In this document: piece after piece, positions 5,064 to 47,005 of the stretch
How the letters are laid out: the number at the start of each line of letters is the position of its first letter
Position numbering within the stretch: the first letter of the stretch is position 1
Assembly: GCF_000143415.4 (NCBI RefSeq)
Contig: NW_003314267.1
Location: 2,074,932 to 2,138,931 of the forward strand
DNA: 64,000 nucleotides
Reading direction: 5' to 3'
DNA from: Selaginella moellendorffii
Lineage: Eukaryota > Plantae > Lycopodiophyta
Translations under genes and position numbers: made by a program
The notes under the pieces: model-generated
What the model saw: the letters and a program-made list of their open reading frames with translations, nothing else
Told to the model about the DNA's origin: nothing
Databases searched by the model: none

Positions 5064-5200
5064 CAATACAGTGACGTTGAAGATTGGAATGGCTATCTGG
5101 ATTGTCGATCCCATTGGCTTCAGTGTTGCTGATTCTTGAGCTGTTGAGATTCATATTTACCCTCTGTTCAAGCTGAACCATCCCACAGGACCCATGTTTT
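5064..5200 (-). pseudogene. 5' fragment of the DJ-1/PfpI (InhA-like) gene
   Basis: Matches 9707-9850 (first codons plus 5' UTR) with small deletions. Confidence 0.75.
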
Positions 5201-5259
5201 GCACTTCTGTGATCTCAATTGCAAGAAACTATTATTGTTCCAAAAAGTTTGCAACATGA

Positions 5260-7931: not shown

Positions 7932-8796
7932 AAAAGGCTGAACAGGAAGTGACTTCAGCGTCAGATGACGGCTGGTGACCGCAACTTCTTCCAGCTCCCG
8001 TTCTTCGTCGTTGATTTTAACAAAGAGAAGTTTCACGTCACGACCATCCAACACCAATGGCGGGCTTTCACCTGCATGGCTTCTGGTTAATGACTACCAA
8101 GATAGCGAACGAAACAACGAAAATGAAAAAGAAAATACTTGAGTTTCTCGGCAAAACCCGGATCTTAAACACCACGGTTGTCTTTTTCTCAAACAGAACA
8201 AATTTCAGCTCGACCTGGATAGAAGGTGGACAAAACGAAATCAGCATCCAATTAGTACGGTGCGATACCGTGTCAAAGTGATAGCCAGTGGGCTTGTAAT
8301 ATTTCAAAAAGCTCTCCTTGGGAGCCTCTTTGACAGCCATCTCTTCAGCTACAGGCGAAGCTCCAACACTCACTGTGGAGAATCGGCTAGACCCTGCAAA
8401 AGCATGCTACAGTTCGACATGCCTTAGTCACGAAAATGGAAAAAAACAAAAAAAACGTACCGGCAATTTCAATCGGCTTCCGCGCACGCAACCAAGTTCC
8501 TACATTTTTTGTTCGAAGATGAGAACCAAAAACAATGCTTGAAACGAATTTCGAAGACAAGGCAAACGTGGAACTGGGTTTACAGTACCGAATGAAGCTC
8601 CTTGCGTGCAAACGAGAGTAGCAAATTCAGAGGAAGTAAATTGACATGAAAAGGAAGAACCGAGAGAGAACAAACAAATCTGAAGCAAGAAGAAATAAAG
8701 CACCGGGAAAGCTCTGGTGGCTAATGACAGTCGCGAGGAGACGGCCAAGACGAAACTAAGCCCTGGTCTCTGGCAAGGCGCCATGACGGTGGCCAT
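7932..8796 (-). pseudogene. 5'-only fragment of M1 aminopeptidase gene
   Basis: Matches 20509-21374. Truncated after ...LKSLPVQPF, and the exon-2 donor site is deleted. Confidence 0.85.
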
Positions 8797-9044
8797 TTCT
8801 CCTCTAAACCCCTAAAATCCAAAGACACAACACAGGCAGCTTCATTCTTTTAGAATCTTTACTGCTCGAGATCATCAAAGCACGAATGCGCTGCGCACAA
8901 AATTGCGAAAAACCTCTCGAGCAAATATTATCGCCCACTGAGGTATCTAAGGATTAAAAGTTACTAAGGACAGAGAAGTTACTAAGGATTTAAAATTTAT
9001 TACTAATCATTGATAAGACGATTTGCATTCAAGAAGAGATGGGA

Positions 9045-9768
9045 TTATTTGGGATTATCGATCCACAGCTCATGGGCAAGCTTGACAATCTCCTCCCCGG
9101 CGTTGCAAGGAGAACCAGCATCGTATGGCGGCTGCGGATCATACTCGATCATCAGCTGCACCGCTTTGGCAATCTTCTCATTCGTGATGATCGAGGCCAA
9201 GTAGATGGCCATGTCGATCCCTGAAGAAACTCCTGCAGCGGTCACGATCTTTCCCTGCTTGATGTACCTCTGGCTCGTCACCTTGGCACCATATTCCTTA
9301 AGCTGCGGATACGCGGCCCAGTGCGTCGTGGCTTTCACGCCCTTGAGCAATCCCGCCGCGCCGAGGATCAGAGCTCCAGTGCACACTGAAGTGGTGAATG
9401 TTGTGCATTCGTGAGCCTGGAAGATCGACACAAGAACAAGCAGGGCTGGATCGATCGAAATGGATGAAGAAACGAGCAATTACCTTGCGGATGTAGTCGA
9501 GGAGTGGCTTGTGATCTAACGGCAGGAGCTTGGGAGTGCCTCCTGGAACTAGCAGAATGTCAGGATTGGGCAGATCTTCAAAGCTGGCGCTTGCTTCAAT
9601 CTTGAATCTGCCTTCGTCTGCAACAACGAGGCCCGGCTTGTCGCTCACGAAGGTAACGCTCACTCCCGGGAGGCGATGGAGCGCTTCATACGGCCCAATT
9701 GCATCCAACACAGTGATGTTGTTGAAGATTGGAATGGCTACCTGGATTTTCGATCCCATTGGCTTCAT
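9045..9768 (-). CDS. DJ-1/PfpI family protein, isonitrile (isocyanide) hydratase InhA-like, 218 aa
   Basis: Two exons (9484-9768, 9045-9416) with a 67-bp GT-AG intron in phase 0. Motifs LDAIGPYE, LLVPGG, SVCTGALILGAAGLLKG.KATTHW, GVSSGIDMA, EYDPQPPYDAGSP. Confidence 0.9.
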
Positions 9769-9880
9769 GCTCAGTGTTGCTGATTCTTGAGCTGCTGAGA
9801 TGGGTATTTATCCACTGCTCAAGCTGAACCAGGGGCCCATGTGTTGCACGTGTTTTCGTTCATAAACAAGGTGTAAGTAT

Positions 9881-11970
9881 AAAACATGGGGAGAAGGGCC
9901 CCAAATGTCACTATGAACAAGTTCTAGTATTTCAGAGCCACGTCGTGCTCCTCGCTTTGGAAAAGGAAGCTTGTGTTGTTTCCCAAGCTGGCAACCATCG
10001 CAAAAGGAAAGTTTTGCAGTGGTTGTGAACTGGGAATCAAGGCCTTCGACAAGTCTGTCCGTCGTGAGCTGAGCAATGCGCCGTGTGCTCGCATGTCCGA
10101 AACGGCGATGCCACAGCTCAAGCTCGTCCAGGGTAGGAGCCATGAACGTGAGGAACTGATGAGGGCGTTCAACCACTTCAGCAGCTCGTATTGGCTCCAT
10201 ACAAAGCTTGTATAGACCTTTCAAATGCCAACAAATCCTAAGTCACCCGCGGGAGTGAGCAAAATGCATCCAGATTTGCCGAAACGAATGTCAAATCCAG
10301 ATTCAGTGAGTTGGCCGACAGAGAGCAAGTTCGCACTTAAGTGTTGGAACAAGGTATACATCATGAATTGTGGTGCTAAAACCACTCTCAAGTTTGAGCA
10401 AGATGGTACCTCGACCAGTGACTTGGATCCATCCCCTACTGCAACTGTGGCTGGTGGATCAACATCTTGGAGCGTCTTGAACCACTGAGCGTCGTGCGTC
10501 AAGTGATCCGTCGCTCCTGAATCAAAGAAAGACGTTTCTTGATTTTTAGATGCGATATAGAGTGAACGTACTGAGCCAAAAGCTGTTGCATCAGCTTGAT
10601 GAACCATCAATGCCTTAGCCTTCGTCTTCAGTCATTTCTCTGGGTATTTGAACCAACAGTTGTGTTCAGCATGATTCGTTTTCTTGCAATGTGGGCAGGG
10701 GTTGAATTTTCTGGTTGTGCTGGAAGAACTCCCCTGGAACATGACAGTTTCTTCTTGCTTGGCCGAGCTGTGGTATTGTAGGAAGAAGTCTCACTCTTTT
10801 CCATCGTTTTTCGTCGCAAGGCAGTGTTGTGTAACGCTGTCATGACTTCTCCCAGGAAATTTGACCACCGGGGACTGTGGGTTGAAGCGACTGGATGGTT
10901 GTATCGAAGGTGGAGGGGAGCAAGCTGAGGAGATGCTCATATTCCTCAGCTTCATCCATCTGTGCGCCCACAGCAACTAGTCGTCCAAGATTTGTTTGAT
11001 GACAGCAACATGGTCATTGGCGGACATTGCCATGGAGTAGAGCTTCTGGCGAAGATGCATGCGATTAGCAGGTGTCTGCTGTTCATGAATTGCTGTAAGG
11101 GTTGCCCACACCTCACATGCTTTTGTGCAATGTGATACTACTCAAAAGTCTCGTGTGTGTAAGGCTTGGAAAACCTTGCCAAGGGCTTTGCAATTAATCA
11201 CAGCCCATTTGTCCTGTCCTGCTCATCTTGGGAGCTGTTCAAGGTCTTTTGTGGGGCATGGTCACACCCCACAGCCTTTGTTCATCCAAATAACATTTGA
11301 TGTGAATGTGTTTAAAATGTATAGTAGAGATGGTGGGTAAGTTGGGTATAATTAACTATCTTAAGGCATAGTTTAGCTCTTGCCTGTCCTTATTATGTGG
11401 TTTAAGTTTAATTTCTATACCATGCTAGCTTGTGGGGTATTGATATGTTATATAGGCCATTAATATACATAAATAATGCCAAATTTTATTTGATTCCATT
11501 TTACATGTTAATTATAGCATTAGGATGTTAAAAGCTTTAGAACTGTTTAATGTCATTCTGTGTTCTTATCCCTTTTCTCCTTAAGATGAACACTCAAGAA
11601 AATCTTTGTGTTCTAGTTCCTTTGTTCTTTAGCTATAAATTTAGTTGTTAAGCTTTATTCCTTTATTCAATGGCCTAAAGCTCTAAAACTCAAGTTTTAC
11701 TCTACTATCATTAGACATATACACCATTACTTTCACTTCCAAATTCTTTGGAACCATTTATTGTTAAGACTGGAAAAATCAGTAACTGTAATAGGAGAGA
11801 GATGAGAAGGGAGGGAGGAGGAGAATTCATCACCTTTAAAGGCTACCTAACCAAGCAATCAATCTCCTTGCCCTAATTCACCTTATCTTGCTGCTGTGTG
11901 AGCATGCTGATGCATTCTATGCTACTCTCTTTATCTCCTCGTCATTCTAGATCGTACTCCTCTGATACCA
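9881..11970 (-). mobile_element. Ty1/Copia remnant (PBS, gag, protease, GAG-pre-integrase, start of integrase)
   Basis: FDSGATDHLT (protease), LWHRRFGHAS...CDGCQLGKQHKLPF...LELVHSDIWGP. PBS reverse complement tctgatacca at 11961-11970. Frameshifted. Confidence 0.9.
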
Positions 11971-12020
11971 TGTTATGATGTTCAATTGAGATTGAATTGT
12001 TGAGCTTGAAATTCACAACA

Positions 12021-12610
12021 TGGTATCAGAGGAGTATGATCTAAGATGACAAGGAGACCGGAGAGAGTAGCTTAGGATGCATCAGCATGCTCATGCAACA
12101 CTCACAAGATGAATTAGGGCAAGGAGATTGATCACCATGTTTGTGCACAATCATGCCAAGGTCTCTGTCTGGGACAGGCTTGGGCCACACCAAGAGGGTG
12201 CAGCCCGTGCAGCCAAAAATCGGAAGCGTAATGGGCAAAATGCCAAGAAAAAGAAGGACAAAAAGCACAAGGATAATAGCTTGTGTAATATTTGCAAGAA
12301 ACCACACTTGTAGTCATCTTTGTATTTTTGGCTGTGTTGCTTATGCTTTTGTCACCAAGAAGCATGGCACCAAACTTGAAGATTGCAGCGTGAAGGCTAT
12401 TCTCATTGGCTATGGTGACTAGAAATGAAGGCTTACAAGCTCTACAGCCTTTCCAGTTCAAAGATCTTTCACAGTCATGATGTGATCTTTGACAAGTCTC
12501 AGACTTTATGCTACTTACAATCTTCCCACAGCAATCGAGCCCCCAGTCAAGTGTCAATAGTTTGTGACAATTGACAGTGATGGAGAAGAAGACACCTCTA
12601 CTTCTAGGTT
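12021..12610 (+). mobile_element. Internally deleted Copia remnant in opposite orientation
   Basis: PBS TGGTATCAGAG at 12021; CNICKKPH zinc-knuckle remnant; HLCIFGCVAYA...KL..KAILIGY..AYKLY..DVIFD post-integrase motif. Confidence 0.8.
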
Positions 12611-14665
12611 CTTGTTTATTTCTTCACAGCTACCATCGTCTCCTCTGTAGACGGAGCCGATCGGCTTTCAGTTTTCATGAAGGAAAACTGGATGAAGAAC
12701 CGCTGCGAGCTGCCGTCAGTAAGAGACCCCCCACAATGATCAGGTCCACAGCATGCCAGCATCACTGCCGGAGTACTGTGGACCTGATCATCGTTTGAGC
12801 CAAATGAGCGCGATCCATGCCCAGTGTTATGGGAGATTTCTAGGTTTTTCCGGGGATCTAGGGAACCCGGCGGCCGTTCTCCCGGTTTGTTGTGTCTAGT
12901 TTTCTCTACAAGCTCTCGTTTTTCTCTCTTTTTCTTTAGGGAATCCTCACGGATTGTCCATCCAAGCTGCTGCTTTCTAGGTTTGTTGTGTTTCGGGAGG
13001 TCGAGAAGGCCGAATCTCAAGGAGACGGCCAAAGATTCCCCTGTCTAACTGTGCAAGCTTGTTTTTTTTCTCTCGTCTTTACTGAGTTTGCTGGTGCAGG
13101 TTTGTTGTTGAGTTTCGTCTCTTAGCTCCGCTGTGAACGCTTTTTCCAGTGATGAAGACCAGATCATCTCCAGGAATTCTCTCAGGTGTGCAGTGTTTTA
13201 AACTGGATGGATTTGATCTTTTCCTGTTTTTCTTTGTTTAGGGGGTATCGATCGAGTGAAGACTACATATCCATATGTAGCAGTTAAAAAAGCAGACAGA
13301 GAGCATGGAGGATATCCAATGGACAGGTTTTGCTATGAAAGAAATGTAAGCTTTATATTTGTCTCGGGCTTTGTAATATTGTTTTTCTTTGTGTAATTTC
13401 TAGGGACGAAAGGCCTATTTTCCTCGGCCTGCATAGGTAATTTTTCCCCCTTACCTAAAGAGTGTGCGTTTGGAAGAGGCACAATAGGCATATCAACAAA
13501 AGAAACCAAATATGTAGTTTCTACTAAATGGTGCTAAAGCAAAATTCAGTAAAACAATTAAAGGTATGTTTTGGGTCACTATTGGACAGTAAGTTTTCCT
13601 TTTGTTTCTTTTCTTTAATTTTAGTTTTTTATTTTTCAGGAATTCTACTTTGGATAACATCTCAATTGGATTCAACCATTTACTTTTTTTTTATTGCCTT
13701 CCGGATGAGTTTGACAACGGGTTGGCAATAGACTAGTTTATCACAAAGTATTCTTTCTTGCGTTTACATGTAAAATAATATTTTCTTGCTTTTGTTGCAG
13801 TAAATGCGAAGCCTTTCTTGTACAAATTGCAGCTATTATAAGTTTAGAATAGTAGAGAGAGTTTTTTTGATAGATAATATATAAAAGTCTCGATGCTACA
13901 ATTGCTTTAATGATAGCTCACTTTGAGAGCTTGCATTGCCTTTTTTCCAATGGCTATCACCTCGGCTTCGCCTCGTCCTACTAAAGTTAGTGTTGGCTCC
14001 AGGAATGTGAACTGCCATGGAACTCCTGGGATGGAATTGAGGAGCTCATCACTCGTGTTCTTCTATTTCACAGCCTCCATCATGTGAAGCACTAGACAAC
14101 CTTTAACTCAGCTCAAGTATGACAATGGCACACCATGGAAACTCATCTTGAATTGAAACTCAAAAGTTCCTTAAGACTAAAGGCAAACAACTGCTGGATC
14201 TCAGGCCCAAGATTGCCGTGGGTAAACTTGGTTTTGAATAAAAATTAATGCTTTCTGAGATCAAGTCATAGTTTAAGCATTAACATCAATGCTTTATTAA
14301 GGTTAACTTGCTAGAGTTTGTTCTTTAGCAAGAGGTAAATGAAAGTCTTCAAAAACTGCATTGGACTTCCATTGACTGACGTTGACTTTGAGCTCTCAGG
14401 TCAGCTGGTGCATGTTCCCGAGTTTTCTTTTTTTCATTTTGCTGCAGTCGAAAGCATAGAAAATCGTGGTAGGCCATAGGAGGAACGATCTAGTTGTTTA
14501 TGTTTTGAGGGATTTGCAAAAGCTTCCCACAATATTTGTTGCTCAAGGATATTATCTATCCATCGTTTATAATCTTGTGGTACCCAACCTCGAAGCATGT
14601 GACAAATGACTGCAAGTGTTTGTGAAATTTGCTAACGAAAGAACGAGGATTTACTTTGGCATTGA

Positions 14666-16512
14666 TCAAATTCGCGAGAATAGTTCCTGGATGCTGCCCT
14701 TCTGGACGTCACCCGCGCATATCTGCGAGAAAGAGCTTCCACTGTTCTAAGAGAATCCTCGTCTGATCAGCAAGACATTTACCTCCACGATTTTCTCTGA
14801 GGCTTCCGGGACCACGATCGCTTCCACGCAAACTTCCGCGACCTGATCCACGAGCCGCAAGACCTTTTAGATGCATGCTTTCCTGCTAGAGTTTCTTACC
14901 TTTGATCGACTGATACCACCTATGAAGAGCGAGTCGGCTGGCCTCATGACGAGAGCCTCATCCTGGAACAAAAAGAAACGTTATCTCTAAGAAACTTAGG
15001 AGAGAATAGCAACGCTTACAGCGGGTGCGTTCTCTCGTAGACCAGCAGGCCTTACGATAGTGTACTCAAGCCCTGAGCGTTGCAATGCAAGCTCTGCCTG
15101 CCTTTTCCTGAGGAAGCATAAAACGAGTGAGACAACATTCTTGTGAAGTTGAAGCCTGTTTCGCTTACCACCACAGAATGGGGATTATCTGGAGGAATGA
15201 CGAGACTCCTATCGACGTAACCAGTATAAACCGCGAGCTAAATGTCAGTCTGGATAGACAATACTTTGCTTGCTACCTTTTTCACTTGTCCTTGGTTCTT
15301 GGCTGCCGAGATAAGGTTCACAACTCCTTCATACTCGATCTGCAAAAAATCACTCAGTGTCAAAGAGAATGTGATTAACAACTTAAGAACCTGGTAAGTC
15401 TTCATAATATCCAGCGGGAAAAACTTCGTCCCAATGGCACACACGACCGCATTACTGTAAAGCTTGCATTAGACTGGAAGATGAGAACGAGCCAAACGTA
15501 CCTATCACCCAGTGCTTGCTTGAGAGTTTCGTATTTACAAATGTCGCCACGGACAGCCTGCTTGTCCAGAAAGAAGACACGATACCAGACAACGCAGTGA
15601 CACCAGCAGCACAAATTTCAACTTACAGTCACGTTGCCCTGCTCGTTGAATCGATTGGCCTTATCACGACACAATGCTCGCACTTTAGCACCTCCTTTCG
15701 AGAGCTTTTCCATCACGAGCCTGAGTTTAGAGAATCAAAACTTGGTTACAAAGGCAAAAACGAAAAAAAAAGCAAGAACGGAAAAACGAACTCACGAACC
15801 TTCCAGTTCTTCCCCAGGCACCGGCCACGAAAACCTTGAGATCAGCAAACCGCCCTTGATCGTGCCGAGGTTGCTCCTTTGGTTCCGTGCCATCTTGATC
15901 TTGCTCCTTTGGTTCCGTGCCATCTTGATCGTGCCGGGGCTGCTCCTTTGATTTCTTGCCATCTTGATCGTGCCGGGGATGCTCCTTTGATTTTATGCCT
16001 TTAGACGAATCCACGGGAGCGCTGCCAGAAACTTCTTTCGAGACTGCCTCAGCCCCAGCTTCTACGTTCTCTTTCAAATCTCCTCCCAAAGAAGAGATGC
16101 CCTCGAGCCGATCTCTCTCTTCTGACTCTTCCACTCCATCGTCAGCTTCGTTCTCCTCTCTCAAATCACCTGGCAAAGAAGAGACGGCCTCGGGCTCTTC
16201 CGACTCCTCAACTCCATCCTCGCCATCATCCGACGCAGCATCCTCGTCGGAGATTTCTTCATCCAGCGCATTATCGAGCAAAGATTTCTCTTGCCGATCT
16301 TCCTCAGCCACGTTGGGAGTCGAGCTATCCAGGATGTGAGGCTGCCGGACGAGCTCTTCCTCCACCGGATCATACAGATTACGCTTATTCAGGAGCTTCA
16401 TATGCCCTGCACAGACCGATGCGATCAACAACAGCCAAGACGCAAGAACAAGAGAAGAAAATTTCCACTCACGAGCTCGCCGATGCTTCGTCCGCGCCAC
16501 AATCTTCTGCAT
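14666..16512 (-). CDS. NAD(P)-binding Rossmann-fold (NAD_binding_10 / atypical SDR, TIC62-like) protein with acidic N-terminal region; copy lacking the upstream transit-like peptide
   Basis: Multi-exon: KVFVAGAWGRTGR, AVRGDI, IEYEGVVNLISAAK, FILVTSIG, LWWKRQAELALQRSGLEYTIVRPAGL, ISRSKVAEVCVEA, ending ELFSRI*. Glycine motif S>W relative to the paralog, so functionality is uncertain. Confidence 0.7.
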
Positions 16513-16863
16513 ATCGCGCTTGGTGGTGGTGGTCTTGTTGATCAAAGGCCGGGAGTGCCGGTATGTGTTCGTCCCGGGATGGAGGACGGATATCTTGAGC
16601 CGGGCGGACGAGATGAGTGAAGCTTGCGAGGACGATGTCTAGACGAAGCGGTGGTGATTTCTCCGTTGGCGTGGCACCAGCGGCTTGTAGAAAGTGGAAG
16701 AATTGAGATGGCTTTTGAGGAGCTGAGTGGTGAAGCTGTATACAATCTTATGGCAAATGCTTGCTCGACCTGAAAAGGTGTGATTTTTCCCAAGCAAATA
16801 GCTTGTATATCTATCAAGAAGAATGCAACAACGAGCTTACGATTGCGAACTCCTTGATCTTTC

Positions 16864-27474: not shown

Positions 27475-28070
27475 TGTAAGCTCCTGAATTTGGACTTCCC
27501 GGGAAGTCACCCAGCCCAGTACTATTCAAACCCAAGGACGTTTAACCCCAAGTATCCCAAAACCCTTAACCGATTGGAAAAGGGGGTGCACTCTTGTTCA
27601 TGGGCCCTTTCCCTCTATATTTAAACCCTATGGATCATCTTTCAAGTCATTCTCTTTAGTTGCTTACAATCTACCACGCTTCCCTGCAAGTTCACGCCCT
27701 CGTGAATGGAAGTTGAGAGCCGCAGCTCTCTCTCGAGCCTCGCTCTCTTGACACCCTACCCCTTGGGTCGAGCCTAGTGGGAGCAAATTGGACCAACCAG
27801 ATGTCAATCAATCAACATGTGGGGTGATTCCCTTAGCCAACCAATAGAGTCGAACCTGAGACCACTCTGATACCAAATGTAAGCTCCTAAATTTGAACTT
27901 CCAGGGAGGTCACCTAGCCCAGTACTATTCAAACCCAAGGACACTTAACCCTAAGTATTGTAAAACCCTTAACCGATTGGAAAAGGGGGTGCACTCTTGT
28001 TCATGGGCCCTTTCCCTTTATATTTGAACCCCAATGGATCATCTTTCAAGTTGTTTTCTTTGGTTGCTTA
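27475..28070 (-). mobile_element. Cassandra TRIM retrotransposon (second copy, runs into gap)
   Basis: Reverse complement of the same family: LTR 27475-27668, 209-bp internal region with PBS (ctctgatacca, ~27865-27875), second LTR 27878-28070 ending at the N-run. Confidence 0.9.

Positions 28071-29222: not shown

Positions 29223-29225
<3 letters not shown>

Positions 29226-29308
<83 letters not shown>
29226..29308. repeat. (TA)n microsatellite
   Basis: About 40 perfect TA units, expanded from a short tatata in the paralogous units. Confidence 0.98.
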
Positions 29309-29313
<5 letters not shown>

Positions 29314-29439
29314 CATATGTAAGACTAACCACATTACAAAGTATATTTCAAATATATGCCAACTATTTCATTTGCGATACAATTAAAGTAATGATTATAG
29401 CCTAGTAGTCATAAAAGAAATAACCTCTATTGACTTACT

Positions 29440-34670: not shown

Positions 34671-37270
34671 TCAAATTCGCGAGAATAGTCGTCACCCGCG
34701 CATATCTGCGAGAAAGAGCTTCCACTGTTCTAAGAGAATCCTCGTCTGATCAGCAAGACATTTACCTCCACGATTTTCTCTGAGGCTTCAGGATCGCTTC
34801 CACGCAAACTTCCGCGACCTGATCCACGAGCCACAAGACCTTTTAGATGCATGCTTTCCTGCTAGAGTTTCTTACCTTCAATCGACTGATACCACCTATG
34901 AAGAGCGAGTCGGCTGGCCTCATGACGAGAGCCTCATCCTGAAACAAAAAGAAACGTTATCTCTAAGAAACTTAGGAGAGAATAGCAACGCTTACAGCGG
35001 GTGCGTTCTCTCGTAGACCAGCAGGCCTTACGATAGTGTACTCAAGCCCTGAGCGTTGCAATGCAAGCTCTGCCTGCCTTTTCCTGAGGATGGGAAAAAC
35101 GAGTGAGACCACATTCTTGCGAAGTTAAACTTGTTTCGCTTACCACCACAGAATGGAGATTATCTGGAGGAATGACGAGACTCCTATCGACGTAACCAGT
35201 ATAAACTGCGAGTTAAATGTCAGTCTGGATAGACAATACTTTGCTTGCTACCTTTTTCACTTGTTCTTGGTTCTTGGCTGCCGAGATAAGGTTCACAACT
35301 CCTTCATACTCGATCTGGAAAAAATCACTCAGTGTCAAAGAGAATGTGATTAACAACTTAAGAACCTGGTATGTCACCCTGTATTACATGACTATATCAG
35401 CTAAAGCAGTGACAATGCGACGACGTACCTATTCCCAGTCCAATTGTGGAAGTACTGCAAAGCAAACGTAGAGGTTAGTGGTTGTAGAACCTCTAATTCA
35501 GACCAACCTCATGACCGATCACACCCAAAATTGCCGCGTAGTCAACATCTGTAGCAGTTTCAGCAGATGCCAGAACAAGTTTCGAGTTGAATATCTGATA
35601 CGAATAGAAAAATTAAGTGAATCCAACAGCAAAAAAGAGACTCACATTCAAGCTCTTGTTCTCCATAGCACCCCTACACCATGCATCAGTTACCAAAAAC
35701 GAACAAAAACAACGGCATCGTACATGTTGAAATCGGGAACAGCGACAATGTTAAACAGGTCAAGATCATACTCCAACACATACACCTGTGCGAAGTTGAG
35801 ATAAAAGAGACAGAGAGAGAAAAAAGACTTCTACTTACATCCTCATCCCACTTCATTGAAAGCTTGAGAGCATGCATAGCATGCTCTGTCTTTGGGACGT
35901 CTTGTGCAGGAGTCCAAATCCTCAGTTGAACATCCCTTCCTGAACGCGTTTCAAAAGTATCGTCTCTGGACGTGAGTTGCCCCGCTACCAAGGCAAAGAG
36001 GTAGCAAGGCTTTTTGAAAGGATCCTCCCACACAGCATAATGAAATCCATTCTGACCACAGCACGTCAGGCTCTACACAATGCCAGTGAAGAAACAATGC
36101 CAACCTCGAGGTCTCCGGAGTCTATAAGGTTGCCATTCGACAAAAGAACGGGATACTGTGCTTTGTCCGCTTCTATCCTGGTAGTGAACTTTGCCATAAC
36201 GTCTGGCCGATCCTGTAATAGCTCGCCAGAATGTCAGCCAAACATTGTCACAAAAAAAGACCTGGTAAAAGGTTATCTTTCTAAAACCTTCAGCTTCGCA
36301 TTGTGTACAAAACATGCCGCTGGAAGACTTGTAGAGCCCCTTTTGGAGAAAAAAAAGTAACTTGATCCCACTTACTTCGAGAGACAAGTTAGTCTCCGGG
36401 TGTATCTCAGAGCCAATCTCTAAATCAAAAGGCTGAACAGGAAGTGACTTCAACGTCAGATGACGGCTGGTCAAATCAACTTCTTCCAGCTTCTGTTCTT
36501 TGCCGTTGATTTTAACAAAGAGAAGTTCACGTCACGACCATCCAAAACCAATGGCGGGCTTTCACCTGCATGGCTTCTGGTTAATGACTACCAAGATAGC
36601 GAACGAAACAACGAAAGTGAAAAAGAAAATACTTGAGTTTCTCGGCAAAACCCGGATCTTAGACACCACGGTTGTCTTTTTCTCAGACAGAACAAATTTC
36701 AGCTCGACCTGGATAGAAGGTGGACAAAACGAAAGCAGCATCCACTTAGTAGTGTCAAAGTGATAGCCAGTGGGCTTGTAATCCTTCAAAAAGATCTCCT
36801 TGGGAGCCTCTTTGACAGCCATCTCTTCAGCTACAGGAGAAGCTCCAACACCCACTGTGGAGAATTGGCTAGACCCTGCAAAAGCACGCTACAGTTCGAC
36901 ATGCCTTAGTCCGTAATGGAAAAAAAAAACGTACCGGCAATTTCAATCGGCTTCCGCGCACGCAACCAAGTTCCTACATTTTTTGTTCGAAGATGAGAAC
37001 CAAAAACAATGCTTGAAACGAATTTCGAAGACAAGGCAAACGTGGAACTGGGTTTACAGTACCGAGTGAAGCTCCTTGTCTGCAAAAGAGAGTAGCAAAT
37101 TCAGAGGAAGTAAATTGACATGAAAAGGAAGAACCGAGAGAGAACAAAAAAATCTGAAGCAAGAAGAAATAAAGCGCCGGGAAAGCTCTGGTGGCTAATG
37201 ACAGTCGCGAGGAGACGGCCAAGACGAAACTAAGCCCTGGTCTCTGGCAAGGCGCCATGACGGTGGCCAT
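34671..37270 (-). pseudogene. Chimeric aminopeptidase-5' / Rossmann-fold-3' gene copy
   Basis: 35371-37270 matches APN 19446-21374; 34671-35371 matches Rossmann gene 14666-15396. Lesions: 1-bp deletion at ~36527, lost donor at ~36750, 22-bp deletion at ~34690. Confidence 0.85.
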
Positions 37271-37552
37271 TTCTCCTCTAAAACCCCTAACATCCAAAGA
37301 CACAACACAGGCAGCTCCATTCTTTTAGAATCTCTACTGCTGGAGATAATCAAAGCACGAATGCGCTGCGCACAAAATTGCGAAAAACCTCTCGAGCAAA
37401 TATTATCGCGCGCTCCTCTTCACGCGGTTATCTAAGGATTAAAAGTTACTAAGGACTAAAAGTTACTAAGAGAAGTTACTAAGGATTTAAAATTTACTAC
37501 TAAGGATCGATCACCCATTGATAAGACGATTTGCATTCAAGAAAAGATGGGA

Positions 37553-38276
37553 TTATTTGGGATTATCGATCCACAGCTCATGGGCAAGCTTGACAATCTC
37601 CTCCCCGGCCTTGCAAGGAGAGCCAGCATCGTACGGCGGCTGCGGATCATACTCGATCATCAGCTGCACCGCTTTGGCAATCTTCTCATTCGTGATGATC
37701 GAGGCCAAGTAGATGGCCATGTCGATCCCTGAAGAAACTCCTGCAGCGGTCACGATCTTTCCCTGCTTGATGTACCTCTGACTCGTCACCTTGGCACCGT
37801 ATTCCTTAAGCTGCGGATACGCGGCCCAGTGCGTCGTGGCTTTCACGCCCTTGAGCAATCCCGCCGCGCCGAGGATCAGAGCTCCAGTGCACACTGAAGT
37901 GGTGAATGTTGTGCATTCGTGAGCCTGGAAGATCGACACAAGAACAAGCAGGGCTGGATCGATCGAAATGGATGAAGAAACGAGCAATTACCTTGCGGAT
38001 GTAGTCGAGGAGTGGCTTGTGATCTAACGGCAGGAGCTTGGGAGTGCCTCCTGGAACTAGCAGAATGTCAGGATTGGGCAGATCTTCAAAGCTGGCGCTT
38101 GCTTCAATCTTGAATCTGCCTTCGTCTGCAACAACGAGGCCCGGCTTGTCGCTCACGAAGGTAACGCTCACTCCCGGGAGGCGATGGAGCGCTTCATACG
38201 GCCCAATTGCATCCAACACAGTGATGTTGTTGAAGATTGGAATGGCTACCTGGATTTTCGATCCCATTGGCTTCAT
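37553..38276 (-). CDS. DJ-1/PfpI family protein, InhA-like (second intact copy)
   Basis: Exons 37992-38276 and 37553-37924. The protein differs from the 9045-9768 copy only by N>K near the C-terminus. Confidence 0.9.
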
Positions 38277-38569
38277 GCTCAGTGTTGCTGATTCTTGAGC
38301 TGCTGAGATGGGTATTTATCCACTGCTCAAGCTGAACCAGGGGCCCATGTGTTGCACGTGTTTTCGTTCATAAACAAGTTGTAAGCAGCTGTTACAATTT
38401 CAATTGTCAACATGAAATAGTTATGTGCAAAATCAAAGTGGCAATTTGTATATTTCATAAAATGAAAATGAAAAAATCACAATGATTTTTAATCATATTT
38501 AGTTTGATAAGTAAAAGACAACATTAATATTAACTAATTTTAAACACTGACTAGTTTAGTCCTGACCAT

Positions 38570-38845
38570 GGCTCAAACAGAGGGGAAAGCTTACTACAGG
38601 CTCCTGAAATGCTAGCTATGACTTGCCAGAGTCAGGATGGCCGAGCCCGGTCTCCAAGGAACTTTGTTCTGTTTTGCAGGAAAGACCTTTACCGAGTTTC
38701 TTCAAGACTTTCAGTGACAGTGTGAAATACTGGACAACCTTTAACTCAGACAATGACCAGTTCGCACTGAGCACCTTATGGAAACTGCTACTGAGTCTTA
38801 CGTTTGTCCTGGCTCCAGTCGCGCTGCTCTACTTGCGGAGGCTGC
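38570..38845 (+). pseudogene. GH1 pseudogene fragment
   Basis: FFKTFSDSVKYWTTFN (cf. the GH1 motif FGDRVKYWTTFNEP), preceded by AYY..L/YDLP remnants and followed by ATE.Y remnants. A related fragment lies at ~21750-21925. Confidence 0.75.
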
Positions 38846-38981
38846 GGAACAAAAGAATGCGAGTGGAGTTCCCCAGCGGTCCACGTTCCAAGAGCCAGCA
38901 GTGGAGGCTGAATGCCAAAAGTTGCGATCAAGCGGCTCGAGAGTGGTGGAGACGAAGCTGACGTGATTGCCATTGGGATAG

Positions 38982-39781
38982 TGTTGAGATATACGCTCTC
39001 TATGACATGATCTTAGGTGGCAGGAGTGCTAAGCTAGATCCTTGTTTAGGCTAGAGGCGTGTCTTTTGATTATGTATATATAGCTATGATGTTATATTCA
39101 ACTATCCTTCGAGTCATCCTTGTCCATCATAGCTTCTGCATATCTCTTTCATGGTATTGGAGCCTTGAAGGCTCCAGATCCTGGGACAATGGCGCTGGCC
39201 GAGGAGGAGGTCAACAAGGATGATGATGAGCCACTGGACGTGGTTGAGAGGTGCCAAGATTTGGCACTGCACTGCACTAAGCGCCAAGATAACGGCACTA
39301 GCAAGCTGAGCAAGGCGCTAAGGCATGATTTAGAAGAGACTGGCCCGGAGGTGCTAACAAAGGCGCTGAGAGAGGGCTGGCATGGTACTGGAGCGCTAAG
39401 TGATGCATGCTAGGGCGTGAGATAGCGGCCCTGAGGGATAGCTGAGAGGAGGCACTGCACTAGGGCGCGAGAGAGCACTGGACACAGCGCAGAGCCGTTG
39501 AGAGAGGGCTGGTGCGGCAATAGGGTGTGGGAGAGCACTGGAGAAGGCCCTGAGGCGCTGGCAGAGGCGCTGAGAGAGTGGTGTGCACCGAGCAGAGAGA
39601 CTGGCCAGAGGCGCTGACAGAGGTGCTGGGCACTTGACATTGGCCAGGGGTGAATGCCATGAAAGAAGAAGAGCGGAAGTTACGATGACTTGGAATGATA
39701 ATCATATATTTAGCTATAATGTTATATTTTATTATCCTTCGAGTCATTTTTGTCCATCATAGCTTTTGCATATCTCTTTCA
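38982..39781 (+). mobile_element. 800-bp TRIM-like LTR element
   Basis: TG...CA ends, TSD GATAG (38977-38981 / 39782-39786), PBS-like TGGTATTGGAGC at 39152, purine tract ~39642-39654, terminal direct repeats of ~75 bp ending ctctttca. Confidence 0.75.
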
Positions 39782-40261
39782 GATAGAATAGGCAATGCAG
39801 GTTCTCAAAATAAGTTACATTGTCAGCTTATATATATTATTTATCACATACAAAAAGTAATACTTTGTAATAAATTAGTCCATTGCCAGCCTATTGTTAA
39901 ATTCGTTCAAAAAAAGAGTTGACACCTGAAAAAAAAAACACTAGACCTAAAAAAAAACAAAAAGAAAACTGAAAAAGAAAAAATTAAACCTAAAGAAGAA
40001 AAACAAAAAGAAAATTTGACCCAAAACATGCCTTTGGTTACTCTAATTTGGCACTATTTTATAAAAACTGAATATTTAATTTCATCTGTTAATATGGTGC
40101 TTATTAGGTAAAAGGGAAAAATTGCCTCCACAGGCATATCCTCACAGTAAAGACACAATGCAATGGCCTCATATGCCAACCTAGAGGAAAAAAATAAACT
40201 TGCAGAGTTCATCTCCTTGAGATTCTGCTTTCTCAACCTCCCGAAACACAACAAACCCGAA

Positions 40262-42395
40262 ATAACCTAGAAAGTCTCTTGACTTTTACCAGAGCTTGTG
40301 ATTTTGATGCCAGACAGAAAACAAAGGTTTTTCTGTTGTGATCATCAATGAAACTCATGAAAAACCATGAACCTCCATAGAAAACATGGGGAGAAGGGCC
40401 CCAAATGTCACTATGAACAAGTTCTAGTATTTCAGAGCCACGTCATGCTCCTCGCTTTGGAAAAGGAAGCTTGTGTTGTTTCCCAAGCTGGCAACCATCG
40501 GAAAAGGAAAGTTTTGCAGTGGTTGTGAATCAAGGCCTTCGACAAGTCTGTCCGTCGTGAGCTGAGCAATGCGCCATGTGCTCGCATGTCCGAAACGGCA
40601 ATGCCACAGCTCAAGCTCGTCCAGGGTAGAAGCCATGAACGTGAGGAACTGATGAGGGCGTTCAACCACTTCAGCAGCTCGTATTGGCTCCATACAAAGC
40701 TTGTATAGACCTTTCCCAGCTTGTCAAATGACAAATCCTAAGTCACCCGCGGGAGTGAGCAAAATGCATCCAGATTTGCTGAAACGAATGTCAAATCCAG
40801 ATTCAGTGAGTTGGCCGACAGAGAGCAAGTTCGCACTTAAGTGTTGGAACAAGGTATACATCATGAATTGTGGTGCTAAAACCACTCTCAAGTTTGAGCA
40901 AGATGGTACCTCGACCAGTGACTTGGAGCTGTCTTCCATCTCCTACTGCAACTGTGCTCAAACTGAGTTTAGGATCAACATCTTGGAGCGTCTTGAACCA
41001 CTGAGCGTCATGCGTCAAGTAATCCGTCGCTCCTGAATCAAAGAACGACGTTTCTTGATTTTTAGATGCGATATAGAGTGAACGTACTGAGCCAAAAGCT
41101 GTTGCATCAGCTTGATGAACCATCAATGCCTTAGCCTTCGTCTTCAGTCATTTCTCTGGGTATTTGAACCAACAGTTGTGTTCAGCATGATTCGTTTTCT
41201 TGCAATGTGGGCAGGGGTTGAATTTTCTGGTTGTGCTGGAAGAACTCCCCTGGAACATGACATTTTCTTCTTGCTTGGCCGAGCTGTGATATTGTAGGAA
41301 GAAGTCTCACTCTTTTCCATCGTTTTTCGTCGCAAGGCAGTGTTGTGTAACGCTGTCGTGACTTCTTGCCAGGAAATTTGACCACCGGGGACTGTGGGTT
41401 GAAGCGACTAGATGGTTGTATCGAAGGTGGAGGGGAGCAAGCTGAGGAGATGCTCATATTCCTCAGCTTCATCCATCTGTGCGCCCACAGCAACTAGGTC
41501 GTCCAAGATTTGTTTGATGACAGCAACATGGTCATCGGCGGACATTGCCATGGAGTAGAGCTTCTGGCGAAGATGCATGCGATTAGCAGGTGTCTGCTGC
41601 TCATGAATTGCTGTAAGGGTTGCCCACACCTCACATGCTTTTGTGCAATGTGATACTGCTCAAAAGTCTCGTGTGTGTAAGGCTTGGAACCTTGCCAAGG
41701 GCTTTGCAATTAATCACAGCCCATTTGTGCTGTCCTGCTCATCTTGGGGAGCTGTTCAAGGTCTCTGTGGGGCATGGTCACGCCCCACAGCCTTTGTTCA
41801 TCCAAGTAGCATTTGATGTGAATGTATTTAAAATGTATAGTAGGGATGGTAATCTTAAGGCATAATTTAGCTCTTGCTTCCTGTCCTTATTATGTGGTTT
41901 AAGTTTAATTTCCATACCATGGTGGGGTATTGATATTTTATATAGGCCATTAATATGTTGAAATAATGCCAAATTTCATTTAGTTCTATTTTACATGCTA
42001 ATTATAGCATTAAGATTAGAACTATTTAATGTCATTCCGTCCTTCTCTCCTTAAGCTGAACACTCAAAAAAAAATTTGTGCTTTAATTCCTTTATTCTTT
42101 AGCTGCAAATTTAGGAATTAAGCTTTATTCCTTCATTTAATGGCCTATAGCCCTAAAACTCAAGTTTCATTGGACACATGGCATATATTTCCAAATGGAA
42201 AAATCAGTAACTATAATGGGAGAGAGATGAGAAGGGAGGGAGGAGGAGAATTCATCACCTTTGAAGGCTACCTAACCAAGCAATCAATCTCCTTGCCCTA
42301 ATTCACCTTGTCTTGCTGTTGTGTGAGCATGCTGATGCATTCTATGCTACTCTCTCTATCTCCTCGTCATTCTAGATCGTACTCCTCTGATACCA
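40262..42395 (-). mobile_element. Ty1/Copia remnant (duplicate of 9881-11970, retains more integrase)
   Basis: VHSDIWGPSPHVFYGGSWFFMSFIDDHNRKTFVF; gag WATLTAIHEQQTPANRMHLRQKLY; PBS reverse complement ending at 42395. Confidence 0.9.
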
Positions 42396-42445
42396 TGTTA
42401 TGATGTTCAATTGAGATTGAATTGTTAAGCTTGGAATTCACAACA

Positions 42446-43015
42446 TGGTATCAGAGGAGTATGATCTAAAATGACAAGGAGACTGGAGAGCGTAGCTTAG
42501 GATGCATCAGCATGCTCATGCAACACTCACAAGATGAATTAGGGCAAGGAGATTGATCACCATGTTTGTGCACAATCATGCCAAGGTCTTTGTCTGGGAT
42601 AGGCTTGGAGGGTGCAGCCAAAAATCAGAAGCGCAATGGGCAAAATGCCAAGAAAAAAAAGGACAAGAAGTGCAAGGATAATAGCTTGTGTAATATTTGC
42701 AAGAAACCAGACTTGTAGTCATCTTTGTATTTTTGGTTGTGTTGCTTATGCTTTTGTCACCAAGAAGCATGGCACCAAACTTGAAGATTGCAGCGTGAAG
42801 GCTATTCTCATTGGCTATGGTGACTAGAAATGAAGGCTTACAAGCTCTACAGCCTTTCCAGTTCAAAGATCTTTCACAGTCATGATGTGATCTTTGACAA
42901 GTCTCAGACTTTATGCTACTCACAATCTTCCCACAGCAATCGAGCCCCCAGTCAAGTGTCAATAGTTTGTGGCAATTGACAGTGATGGAGAAGACACCTC
43001 TACTTCTAGGCTCTT
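42446..43015 (+). mobile_element. Internally deleted Copia remnant (duplicate of 12021-12610)
   Basis: Same PBS and motifs. Confidence 0.8.
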
Positions 43016-45061
43016 GTTTATTTCTTCACAGCTACCATCGTCTCCTCTGTAGACGGAGCCGATCGGCTTTCAGTTTTCATGAAGGAAAACTGGATGAAGA
43101 ACCGCTGAGAGCTGCCGTCAGTAAGAGACCCCCCACAATGATCAGGTCCACAGCATGCCAGCATCACTGCCGGAGTACTGTGGACCTGATCATCGTTTGA
43201 GCCAAATGAGCGCTATCCATGCCCAGTGTTATGGGAGATTTCTAGGTTTTTCCGGGGATCTAGGGAACCCGGCGGCCGTTCTCCCGGTTTGTTGTGTCTA
43301 GTTTTCTCTACAAGCTCTCGTTTTTCTCTCTTTTTCTTTAGGGAATCCTCGCGGATTGTCCATCCAAGCTGCTGCTTTCTAGGTTTGTTGTGTTTCGGGA
43401 GGTCGAGAAGGCCGAATCTCAAGGAGACGGCCAAAGATTCCCCTGTCTAACTGTGCAAGCTTGTTTTTTCTCTCTCGTCTTTACTGAGTTTGCTGGTGCA
43501 GGTTTGTTGTTGAGTTTCGTCTCTTAGCTCCGCTGTGAACGCTTTTTCCAGTGATGAAGACCAGATCATCTCCAGGAATTCTCTCAGGTGTGCAGTGTTT
43601 TAAACTGGATGGATTTGATCTTTTCCTGTTTTTCTTTGTTTAGGGGGTATCGATCGAGTGAAGACTACATATCCATATGTAGCAGTTAAAAAAGCAGACA
43701 GAGAGCATGGAGGATATCCAATGGACAGGTTTTGCTATGAAAGAAATGTAAGCTTTATATTTGTCTCAGGCTTTGTAATATTGTTTTTTTTTGTGTAATT
43801 TCTTTGGCCTGAGGATATGCTTGCAGAGGTAACTTTTCCCCCTTACCTAAAGGGTGTGCGTTTGGAAGAGGCACAGCAGGCATATCAACAGAAGAAACCA
43901 AATATCCGGTTTTTACCAAATGGTGCTAAAACAGAATTTAGTAAAGCAACTAAAGGCATGTTTTGGGTCACTGTTGGACGGTAAGTTCTCTTTTTGTTTC
44001 TCTTCTTTAATTTTAGTCTTTTCTTTTTCAGAAATTCTACTTTAGATAGCATCCCAGATGCAATCAACCATTTACTCTTTTTTTATTGCCTTCCGAATGA
44101 GTTTGACAATGGGCCAGTGATGGATTAGTTTATTACAAGATATTCCTTCTTGTGTTTACATGTAAAGTAATATTTCTTGTTTTTGTTGCAATAAATGTGA
44201 AGCCTTTTTTGTACAAATCGCAACTGTTATGAATTTAAGGTAGTAGAGAAAGCCTTTTTGATAAATAATATATAAGAGTTTTGATGCTATAGTCACTTTG
44301 AAGTTAGCTCGCTTTGAGAGCCTGCATTACCTTTTTCCGAATAGCTATCACCTCGGCTTTGCCTCGTCCTGCTAAAGTTAGCGTTGGCTCCAGGAATGTG
44401 AACTGCTGTGGAACTTCCGAGATGGAATCTAGGAGCTTGTCACTCACGTTCTTCTATTTTGCAGCCTCTGCCGTGTGAAGCACTGGACAACCTTTAACTC
44501 AGCTCAAAATGACAATGGCGCACCATGGAAACTTGTCTTGAATTGAAACTCAAAAGTTCCTTAAGGCTAAAGGCAAATGACTGCTGGATCTCAAGGATTG
44601 CCTTGGGTAAACTTGGTTTTGAATAAAAATTAATGCTTTCTGAGATCAAGTCATAGTTTAAGCATTAACATCAATGCTTTATTAAGGTTAACTTGCTAGA
44701 GTTTGTTCTTTTGCAAGAGGTAAATGAAAGTCTTCAAAAACTGCATTGGACTTCCATTGACTGACGTTGACTTTGAGCTCTCAGGTCAGCTAGTGCATGT
44801 TCCCCGAGTTTTCTTTTTTTCATTTTGCTGCAGTGGAAAGCATAGAAAATCATCAAGTAGTGTGGTAAGCCATAGGAGGAATGATCTAGTTGTTTATGTT
44901 TTGAGGGATTTGCAAAAGCTTCCCACAATATTTGTTGCTCAAGGATATTATCTATCCATCGTTTATAATCTTGTGGTACCCAACCTCGAAGCATGTGACA
45001 AATGACTGCAAGTGTTTGTGAAATTTGCTAACGAAAGAACGAGGATTTACTTTGGCATTGA

Positions 45062-47005
45062 TCAAATTCGCGAGAATAGTTCCTGGATGCTGCCCTTCTG
45101 GACGTCACCCGCGCATATCTGCGAGAAAGAGCTTCCACTGTTCTAAGAGAATCCTCGTCTGATCAGCAAGACATTTACCTCCACGATTTTCTCTGAGGCT
45201 TCCGGGACCACGATCGCTTCCACGCAAACTTCCGCGACCTGATCCACGAGCCGCAAGACCTTTTAGATGCATGCTTTCCTGCTAGAGTTTCTTACCTTTG
45301 ATCGACTGATACCACCTATGAAGAGCGAGTCGGCTGGCCTCATGACGAGAGCCTCATCCTGGAACAAAAAGAAACGTTATCTCTAAGAAACTTAGGAGAG
45401 AATAGCAACGCTTACAGCGGGTGCGTTCTCTCGTAGACCAGCAGGCCTTACGATAGTGTACTCAAGCCCTGAGCGTTGCAATGCAAGCTCTGCCTGCCTT
45501 TTCCTGAGGAAGGATAAAACGAGTGAGACAACATTCTTGCGAAGTTAAAGCTTGTTTCGCTTACCACCACAGAATGGGGATTATCTGGAGGAATGACGAA
45601 ACTCCTATCGACGTGACCAGTATAAACTGCGAGTTAAATGTCAGTCTGGATAGACAATACTTTGCTTGCTACCTTTTTCACTTGTCCTTGGTTCTTGGCT
45701 GCCGAGATAAGGTTCACAACTCCTTCATACTCGATCTGCAAAAAATCACTCAGTGTCAAAGAGAATGTGATTAACAACTTAAGAACCTGGTAAGTCTTCA
45801 TAATATCCAGCGGGAAAAACTTCGTCCCAATGGCACACACGACCGCATTACTGTAAAGCTTGCATTAGACTGGAAGATGAGAAAGAGCCAAACGTACCTA
45901 TCACCCAGTGCTTGCTTGAGAGTTTCGTATTTACAAATGTCGCCACGGACAGCCTGCTTGTCCAGAAAGAAGACACGTTACCAAACAACGCAGTGACACC
46001 AGCAGCACAAATTTCAACTCACAGTCACGTTGCCCTGCTCGTTGAATCGATTGGCCTTATCACGACACAATGCTCGCACTTTGGCACCTCCTTTCGAGAG
46101 CTTTTCCACCACGAGCCTGAGTTTAGAGAATCAAAACTTGGTTACAAAGGCAAAAACGAAAGAAAAAAGCAAGAACGGAAAAACGAACTCACGAACCTTC
46201 CAGTTCTTCCCGAGGCACCAGCCACGAAAACCTTGAGATCAGCAAACCGCCCTTGATCGTGCCGAGGTTGCTCCTTTGGTTCCGTGCCATCTTGATCGTG
46301 CCGGGGCTGCTCCTTTGATTTCTTGCCATCTTGATCGTGCCGGGGATGCTCCTTTGATTTTATGCCTTTAGACGAATCCACGGGAGCGCTGCCAGAAACT
46401 TCTTTCGAGACTGCCTCAGCCCCCCCAGCTTCTACGTTCTCTTTCAAATCTCCTCCCAAAGAAGAGATGCCCTCGAGCCGATCTCTCTCTTCTGAGTCTT
46501 CCAATCCATCGTCAGCTTCGTTCTCCTCTCTCAAATCACCTGGCAAAGAAGACACGGCCTCGGGCTCTTCCGACTCCTCAACTCCATCCTCGCCATCATC
46601 CGACGCAGCATCCTCGTCGGAGATTTCTTCATCCAGCGCATTATCGAGCAAAGATTTCTCTTGCCGATCTTCCTCATCCCCGTCGGGAGTCGAGCTATCC
46701 AGGATGTGAGGCTGCCGGACGAGCTCTTCCTCCACCGGATCATACAGATTACGCTTATTCAGGAGCTTCATATGCCCTGCACAGACCGATGCGATCAACA
46801 ACAGCCAAGACGCAAGAACAAGAGAAGAAAATTTCCACTCACGAGCTCGCCGATGCTTCGTCCGCGCCACAATCTTCTGCATATCGCGCTTGGATCCTCC
46901 CGACGCCGTCGAGCATCGCACCAATCCGCGAGCGCGCCTCGCCGGAGGAGCATCCGCATTGGACCGCCATTGCCATGCGGCATCGAACCCCAACGTTAAT
47001 TCCAT
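45062..47005 (-). CDS. NAD(P)-binding Rossmann-fold (NAD_binding_10, TIC62-like) protein with putative plastid targeting peptide
   Basis: ATG at 47005; MELTLG...RRARGLVRCS; hydrophobic segment; acidic domain; canonical GASGRTG; same exon chain as 14666-16512. Confidence 0.85.

Follow-up and report, generated by a model that had tools for sequence, protein, structure and literature searches.

How does a gene whose product looks bacterial come to lie, split by an intron, in the genome of a lycophyte, and how long has it been there? The question is raised by a 64,000-nt stretch of Selaginella moellendorffii DNA (contig NW_003314267.1, positions 2,074,932 to 2,138,931; hereafter the window, meaning this whole stretch), which holds two near-identical genes for a DJ-1/PfpI protein resembling the bacterial isocyanide hydratase (ICH). 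Integrating gene models, protein comparisons, homologue searches, intron mapping and phylogenetic trees, we favor, with a probability of roughly 0.7, a single ancient acquisition from bacteria, followed by vertical descent in land plants, an apparent disappearance from seed plants and a recent duplication within Selaginella. The gene is bacterial in type, yet the product of neither a recent nor a lineage-specific transfer.

The two genes are tandem copies with the same exon-intron structure, spaced 28,508 nt apart; each encodes a single-domain DJ-1/PfpI protein of 218 amino acids (aa) and contains one intron of 67 nt, as follows (UTR, untranslated region):

9768..9484, minus strand: copy 1 exon 1, starting with the ATG at 9768; 95 codons, carrying Asp22 and equal to the first 95 residues of XP_024526314.1
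9483..9417, minus strand: copy 1 intron of 67 nt (GT..AG, phase 0), separating Lys95 from Ala96 and equivalent to the land-plant family's intron 1
9416..9045, minus strand: copy 1 exon 2, 123 codons plus stop, carrying Cys107, Thr108, Ala155-Ala156-Gly157-Val158 and the C-terminal EYDPQPPYDAGSP arm
8979..9834, minus strand: approximate extent of the transcript from contig pieces, with the 3' UTR reaching ~8979-9014 and the 5' UTR ~9781-9834
38276..37992, minus strand: copy 2 exon 1, same letters as copy 1 exon 1
37991..37925, minus strand: copy 2 intron, same letters as the copy 1 intron
37924..37553, minus strand: copy 2 exon 2, differing from copy 1 by 5 nt; its product is XP_024526288.1

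The products of copies 1 and 2 are, letter for letter, the S. moellendorffii RefSeq proteins XP_024526314.1 (LOC112344927) and XP_024526288.1 (LOC112344922), both encoded on a 3.97-Mb scaffold; the two intact 218-aa copies with one 67-bp intron described in the original prediction are therefore borne out by the gene models and by this match. The genes were already annotated, under the label "uncharacterized" only. A word search retrieved S. moellendorffii proteins at 99-100% identity, and two more close copies, LOC9631597 and LOC9631145, were located on a 3.09-Mb scaffold, which may represent the other haplotype. Older, longer Joint Genome Institute gene models for these loci (P0124, P0128 and P0129, 353-673 aa) were considered as real fusions and rejected: P0124 is a chimaeric model spanning adjacent peptidase M1 and NAD-binding genes, and a Pfam scan of P0128 and P0129 found no domain except DJ-1_PfpI.

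By type, the window protein belongs with the bacterial isocyanide hydratases and not with canonical plant DJ-1. Full-length comparisons were carried out with database protein P0121, identical to both exons, and other searches exon by exon. Both exons match the Pfam family DJ-1_PfpI (PF01965; 28.8 bits for exon 1 and 47.6 bits for exon 2, with a gathering cut-off of 26.6), and the identical full-length database protein carries a precomputed PF01965 assignment. The best solved relative of both exons is the Pseudomonas fluorescens isocyanide hydratase (PfICH), with E values of 3e-28 for exon 2 and 5e-10 for exon 1, the latter aligning to PfICH residues 3-87. In a gap-free alignment, Asp22, within LDAIGP, corresponds to PfICH Asp17, and Cys107 and Thr108, within TSVCTG, to Cys101 and Thr102, while the C-terminal EYDPQPPYDAGSP stretch aligns to its PfICH counterpart, the EY.P.PP..GSP arm. 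Across the family, the aspartate was found in 150 of 152 rows and the cysteine elbow in 148 of 152, that is, in all rows where the motif was readable. Furthermore, an AlphaFold (AF2) model built on a 60-sequence alignment reached a predicted local distance difference test score (pLDDT) of 95, and the top 17 Foldseek matches to it were all PfICH (3NON, 3NOQ), with template modeling (TM) scores of 0.91/0.87, a root-mean-square deviation of 1.6 Å and 38-39% identity over 208 of 218 columns; ordinary DJ-1/PfpI structures gave TM scores of ~0.7 at 18-23% identity. In canonical plant DJ-1 proteins, the acidic active-site position is occupied by Glu, and Arabidopsis DJ-1D was a far weaker match (E 1e-5 over ~55 residues). 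Hence, the single-domain protein of bacterial ICH type, as well as the Asp22, Cys107 and C-terminal arm previously read from the letters, are upheld by the PfICH matches, the fold and the Asp/Cys/Thr set, with all three elements aligning to the P. fluorescens enzyme.

Homologues of the gene are spread over the spore-bearing land plants. Searches with a plant profile recovered liverwort members (Calypogeia, Riccia, Marchantia polymorpha and M. paleacea, that of M. polymorpha bearing the NCBI name "cyclohexyl-isocyanide hydratase"), moss members (Sphagnum and five Ceratodon genes), lycophyte members (Diphasiastrum and two more distant Selaginella paralogues) and fern members (Ceratopteris and Adiantum). 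Seed plants, hornworts and algae were all missing from the best 120 matches of the plant-profile search of 5.8 billion proteins, even though the named plant entries are dominated by seed-plant proteomes, and neither seed plants nor algae were found among the ten best-scoring 50%-identity representatives drawn from 1.84 billion proteins. The HMMER search of these representatives returned 1,241 proteins at E <= 1e-30; among its top ten, the named ones bore bacterial-type names and the others were nameless, one of the ten (P0311) grouping with Sphagnum in the tree. Beyond plants, a scan of species-representative genomes yielded genes 48-56% identical, mostly from Acidimicrobiia, other Actinomycetota and Myxococcota, and the look-alike clusters of the Atlas were 97-100% bacterial, Actinomycetota being the commonest.

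Several candidates for membership were discarded along the way. P0232, which scored plant-like on the plant profile and was considered as an algal or other eukaryotic member, lies on a gene-dense bacterial metagenome contig, and P0258, also considered eukaryotic, is a Logan contig of 947 nt that has no intron and groups with Solirubrobacteraceae-like rows. Proteins P0310 and P0312-P0317 (430-523 aa, from metagenomes and Euzebyales) headed the search of representatives and reached plant-level scores on the plant profile, at least one being named as a fusion to YHS, a metal-binding domain; suspected at first of being fusions of plant genes, they proved to be bacterial proteins with two domains or a YHS fusion, basal in the tree on long branches. 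Among the retained plant members, Ceratodon purpureus P0194 (M758_7G146300) carries in residues 1-35 a hydrophobic, signal-peptide-like N-terminal extension, which hints at a secreted or membrane-anchored isoform.

The introns of the family provide the strongest link among these plants when they are read together with the trees. We mapped the gene structures of eight plant genes onto their proteins, namely the window gene, those of Calypogeia, Marchantia, Sphagnum, Ceratodon and Diphasiastrum, and those of two other Selaginella lineages. Intron 1 lies in phase 0 at the same codon boundary (...K^A/V-H..., where ^ marks the site) in all eight, and intron 2, also in phase 0, at ...Q/E^G-K... in seven, the window gene being the exception; in each of the seven genes holding both, the exon between them measures 162 nt. 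The site in the window gene where intron 2 would be expected, after Gln149, reads AAGCAG^GGAAAG; this lineage has lost the intron. Coincidence by chance is not negligible at one site and very unlikely at two sites across all lineages. Two further features were observed in family genes: the Sphagnum gene (L091:3001-4620) has gained a third intron, in phase 0 and following residue 70, which is absent in the other seven mapped genes, and the Diphasiastrum complanatum gene model P0154 (O6H91_15G023900) has a 12-residue insertion exactly at the intron-1 site, probably reflecting a wrongly placed splice site or the use of an alternative donor.

These positions bear directly on the possibility that the Selaginella lineage acquired the gene recently from bacteria, domesticated it and gained the intron on its own. 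When exon 2 was searched alone, the best matches outside Selaginella were indeed soil-metagenome and actinobacterial proteins at 65-68% identity, compared with 60% for one liverwort protein, from Calypogeia fissa. However, the sole intron of the window gene has the site and phase that intron 1 has in the genes of liverworts, mosses and Diphasiastrum; both introns, enclosing the identical 162-nt middle exon, are also present in two further Selaginella lineages, and maximum likelihood trees group all plants in one clade. Even though a grouping of Selaginella with the sister bacterial clade survives a topology test (see below), we regard a recent acquisition as very improbable.

A FastTree analysis covered 152 rows, with seven proteobacterial and cyanobacterial plasmid homologues as the root. 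All 25 plant rows that bear names fell, along with 15 unnamed transcript-like ones, in one clade with a Shimodaira-Hasegawa (SH) support of 96, which is subdivided along the lines of liverworts, mosses, ferns and Selaginella; the addition of 20 representatives left this clade unchanged (SH 97). An IQ-TREE analysis of 85 rows and 220 protein columns, under LG+C20+F+G4 with posterior mean site frequencies (PMSF), recovered the plant clade with a support of 87/94 (ultrafast bootstrap/SH-like approximate likelihood ratio test) and in 86% of bootstrap trees, and joined the three Selaginella lineages in one clade (100/98). The sister of the plants was a 29-row clade made up mainly of Acidimicrobiia, together with Myxococcia and a handful of other bacteria (79/82), and seven more bacterial nodes separate this pair from the outgroup. 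Proteobacterial homologues stand as outgroup to a plant plus actinobacterial subfamily, PfICH itself being absent from the tree. The closest non-plant relatives of the family are bacterial, bacterial origin is the best reading of these trees, and the microbial derivation proposed in the original prediction stands on them; its placing of the domestication in this lineage does not, given the homologues across the non-seed land plants, their single clade and the two shared intron positions. The family has resided in plant genomes since before the bryophyte/vascular split, as liverworts, mosses, ferns and Diphasiastrum all have homologues, these fall in one clade and the mapped ones share introns.

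A different account would do without horizontal transfer: the gene would be an old eukaryotic or archaeplastid one, or an endosymbiotic transfer, kept only in the non-seed land plants and looking bacterial due to poor algal sampling. Patchy losses occur commonly, the searched databases, in which absence was judged from ranked lists, contain few algal and hornwort proteomes, and the deep nodes of the trees are moderately supported (41-96). Nevertheless, the plant clade lies within bacterial diversity in three tree runs, the single cyanobacterial homologue sampled sits in the distant outgroup, and no other eukaryote appeared among the top matches from either 5.8 or 1.84 billion proteins, despite the many algal, fungal and seed-plant proteomes in NCBI and UniRef. 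A vertical distribution of orthologs through algae and land plants, which had been named beforehand as an observation that would speak against transfer, was found as far as land plants are concerned, and no alga was found in the ranked lists. Taken together, we consider this account improbable, if somewhat less so than a recent acquisition.

Some observations weigh against the single ancient acquisition that we favor. An approximately unbiased (AU) test, applied as a possible rejection of Selaginella grouping with bacteria, failed to reject the topology joining Selaginella to the sister bacterial clade (difference in log-likelihood 9.7, p 0.31). Since the tree of 220 protein columns is weak by itself, we base the case for a single origin on the shared introns and the tree combined. 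The sister group has no more than moderate support (79/82). Both introns sit at proto-splice sites of the classical MAG^R kind, which number 17 in the coding sequence, and parallel gain of the introns is unlikely but not impossible. The absence from algae, hornworts and seed plants refers to ranked lists of named database proteins and not to genome searches. Within Selaginella, LOC9631597 (L098:10001-10724, GL377575.1) differs from the window copies by 14-15 nt, 12 of them in exon 1, with 9-10 non-synonymous versus 4-6 synonymous codon changes; this shows no sign of strong recent constraint and would fit a relaxed or changed one. Finally, regarding function, the diglycyl motif of PfICH is not kept, Gly149-Gly150 being replaced by Ala155-Ala156 and Ile152 by Val158, and our literature search found no assay of any plant or actinobacterial member of the subfamily.

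The possibility that the gene is contaminating or misassembled bacterial DNA in a plant scaffold was also weighed. Only the bacterial type of the protein speaks for an artefact, and against it stand a spliceosomal intron removed in transcripts, plant retroelements flanking the gene inside an 8.6-kb duplicated block, allelic or paralogous copies that lie between ordinary plant genes on another scaffold, and intron-bearing members in the seven other mapped plant genes; its probability is practically negligible. The homologues lie next to plant genes such as those for NEMP, MIF4G, Band_7, RPN7, pentatricopeptide repeat (PPR) and peptidase M1 proteins, and integration into plant genomes is accordingly attested by spliceosomal introns, plant neighbours and transcription. 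With respect to the latter, assembled contigs of four out of four sequencing runs, from four different studies, were placed on positions 8700-10000, and all skip exactly the 67 nt of the intron, which is the spliced junction that the original prediction had proposed to look for; that the runs are RNA is a guess, spliced and gene-confined contigs being typical of transcriptome assemblies. In the four runs, no contig covered the flanks within 8700-10000, outside ~8979-9834. Contigs of all four show the copy-2 letters at 9102 and 9114, and in three of the four the contigs lack copy-2 letters at the other reported variant sites of that copy. Because these three runs carry copy-2 letters only at 9102 and 9114, their contigs would derive from another near-identical copy or be chimaeric assemblies. 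The gene is transcribed from at least one of the near-identical copies.

As for its activity, the product is probably a cysteine hydrolase-like enzyme that operates as a homodimer. In PfICH, Cys101 makes a thioimidate with the isocyanide carbon, and Asp17 serves first as general acid and subsequently, in the hydrolysis, as general base (PMC12570138). By analogy, Cys107 would attack an electrophilic carbon, that of an isocyanide if PfICH is followed, to give a thioimidate, and Asp22 would serve as general acid/base for protonation and for hydrolysis to the N-formamide; cysteine-dependent hydration of isocyanides or of a related electrophile is thus what we infer for this protein. In the P. fluorescens enzyme, Gly149-Gly150 constitute a "highly conserved diglycyl motif" before Ile152 tied to helix motion, and its G150A mutant is active, with a kcat ~6-fold lower (10.1101/524751). 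Alanine at the position of Gly150 was found in every plant and ingroup bacterial row in which the motif was located (151 of 152 rows located), and the outgroup rows read GAGV, GGGV or AGGV. The missing diglycyl motif and the 39% identity weaken full equivalence to PfICH.

The same history is compatible with another chemistry, in which the protein would act on a different electrophile, as a glyoxalase, deglycase or amidase, or would be a ligand-sensing module similar to the DJ-1-like domains of GlxA and FtrA. Functions change easily within the DJ-1 superfamily, identity to the only characterized ICH is 38-39%, and Ala-Ala and Val stand where PfICH has its helix-motion motif and Ile152. In addition, the best NCBIfam matches are the regulator domains FtrA and GbdR, though far below the cut-off (72 bits versus 425 for GlxA/FtrA, of which the DJ-1-like part alone matches, over profile positions 55-191 of 327); the NCBIfam set scanned had no ICH-specific model, and all its matches were far below cut-off. 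Conversely, the ICH-specific Cys-Asp-Thr set is preserved, including an Asp at the site taken by Glu in DJ-1, the entire fold and the C-terminal arm superpose on PfICH at 1.6 Å, and G150A leaves PfICH active. Moreover, the scores for glyoxalase III (TIGR01383, 46.3 bits versus a cut-off of 131) and for the PfpI/YhbO deglycase-protease (TIGR01382, 42.3 versus 139; NF040823, 30.8 versus 330) fall well short, those of the glyoxalase III and PfpI equivalogs reaching a third of the cut-offs, and the protein stops at residue 218 with no C-terminal AraC helix-turn-helix domain, unlike the GlxA/FtrA regulators. A different chemistry is therefore a credible competitor that we hold at short of even odds. 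More speculatively, an isocyanide-detoxifying enzyme could have been taken from soil Actinobacteria at terrestrialisation, retained by bryophytes, lycophytes and ferns for >400 million years as protection from isonitrile antibiotics or metallophores of microbes, and then discarded by seed plants, a tentative and rather doubtful proposal. If true, it would reveal an unstudied layer of chemical defence specific to spore-bearing plants and duplicated in Selaginella.

The recent history of the window copies was examined in the duplicated region, whose additional features are:

5064..5204, minus strand: pseudogene scrap with 5' UTR/promoter and the first 21 codons, broken in frame by a gap (tblastn, blastn)
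7932..16523, strand not applicable: duplicated block A, holding copy 1 and the adjoining copia-like retroelement (self-blastn)
36427..46893, strand not applicable: duplicated block B, holding copy 2 and broken by a ~2-kb insertion at 38386-40377

The scrap, earlier placed at ~5064-5200, proved slightly longer and matches positions 9706-9849 with 81% identity over 150 nt (blastn, E 8e-37). Between the two copies, 5 of 724 nt differ, all in exon 2 (5 of its 372 nt), four being synonymous and one producing Asn199Lys; only 1 of 461 nt differs over exon 1, intron and 5' UTR, and the flanks differ by ~4% when divergence is taken by segment along blocks A and B. Coding and non-coding parts being equally uniform, gene conversion fits at least as well as selection, and the high coding identity was rejected as proof of purifying selection, since intron and 5' UTR are equally identical; the caution already voiced in the original prediction, that intact copies are weak evidence of selection, is in line with this outcome.

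The insertion at 38386-40377 occurs only in copy 2, ~110 nt upstream of the start codon and just beyond the 5' UTR, and consequently the distal promoters of the two copies differ. Directly upstream of the gene lie copia-like retroelement open reading frames with gag/pre-integrase-type motifs, which run on the minus strand from 9808-10610 on to ~16500, were co-duplicated with the gene and are found again at 40378-46893. Elsewhere in the window, an AT-rich stretch at 28001-34000 (GC 0.22-0.31, versus 0.42-0.51 around it) has repeats in common with 2235-4485. In other plants, M. polymorpha scaffold KZ772807.1 carries two family members in tandem (L090:179-1350 and 3001-4085), from which it follows that local duplication of the family gene recurred in several plant lineages; gene numbers reach five in Ceratodon and three or more each in Diphasiastrum and Selaginella.

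Under the ancient acquisition that we favor, a relative of present-day soil Actinomycetota or Myxococcota would have contributed the gene once to the plant lineage, before bryophytes and vascular plants diverged, and two phase-0 introns would have been gained in plants after the transfer. The direction and date of the transfer are inferences, as are the loss in seed plants and the substrate. Vertical inheritance in liverworts, mosses, lycophytes and ferns would have followed, with apparent loss in seed plants. In Selaginella, the family would have split into three lineages, the window lineage then losing the second intron, and the window gene would have been duplicated together with the neighbouring retroelement, its copies being partly homogenized by gene conversion.

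If true, this history would constitute a clean case of an ancient bacterial gene fixed before the radiation of land plants and lost in seed plants, with its time of residence in plants dated by conserved introns. Further, it would offer a testable hypothesis on how spore-bearing plants handle microbial isonitriles, with Marchantia and mosses as tractable systems. A survey of 57 gene families transferred to moss does not include an ICH-like family (Yue et al., 2012; PMC3493653), and a glyoxalase III survey mentions single-domain DJ-1 proteins in moss with no treatment of an ICH-like clade (PMC8170915). Our literature search found no isocyanide-hydratase paper treating plants and no relevant report of horizontal transfer, the larger survey of Ma et al. 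(2022) lying outside this comparison, so that it may hold priority; the plant ICH-like family thus seems unstudied, though the gene is annotated.

Among known systems, the closest characterized one is PfICH (ICH/InhA, EC 4.2.1.103; PDB 3NON, with ~40 related entries), which shares with the window protein a single DJ-1-fold domain of ~220-230 aa, the nucleophilic Cys followed by Thr, the Asp at the acidic position and the C-terminal EY.P.PP..GSP arm; it differs by the 38-39% identity, by Gly149-Gly150 and Ile152 in place of Ala-Ala and Val, and in that the window gene is eukaryotic and intron-bearing. Canonical plant DJ-1 and glyoxalase III proteins (Arabidopsis DJ-1D, PDB 4OFW) have the same superfamily fold and nucleophile elbow, but are tandem two-domain proteins, whereas the window protein has a single domain and 218 aa. 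The as yet uncharacterised DJ-1/PfpI proteins of soil Actinomycetota (Acidimicrobiia, Solirubrobacteraceae, Streptomyces, Catenulisporales) and Myxococcota are 48-60% identical over the full length, equal in length, carry the AAGV, TSVCTG and EYDPQPPF motifs and surround the plant clade in the trees, yet their genes are intron-less and some encode two-domain or YHS-fused proteins. The other land-plant members are 50-60% identical, belong to the same clade and hold the same intron 1, and from them the window gene is set apart by its missing intron 2, its shorter C-terminal tail and its standing as a young, Selaginella-specific duplicate.

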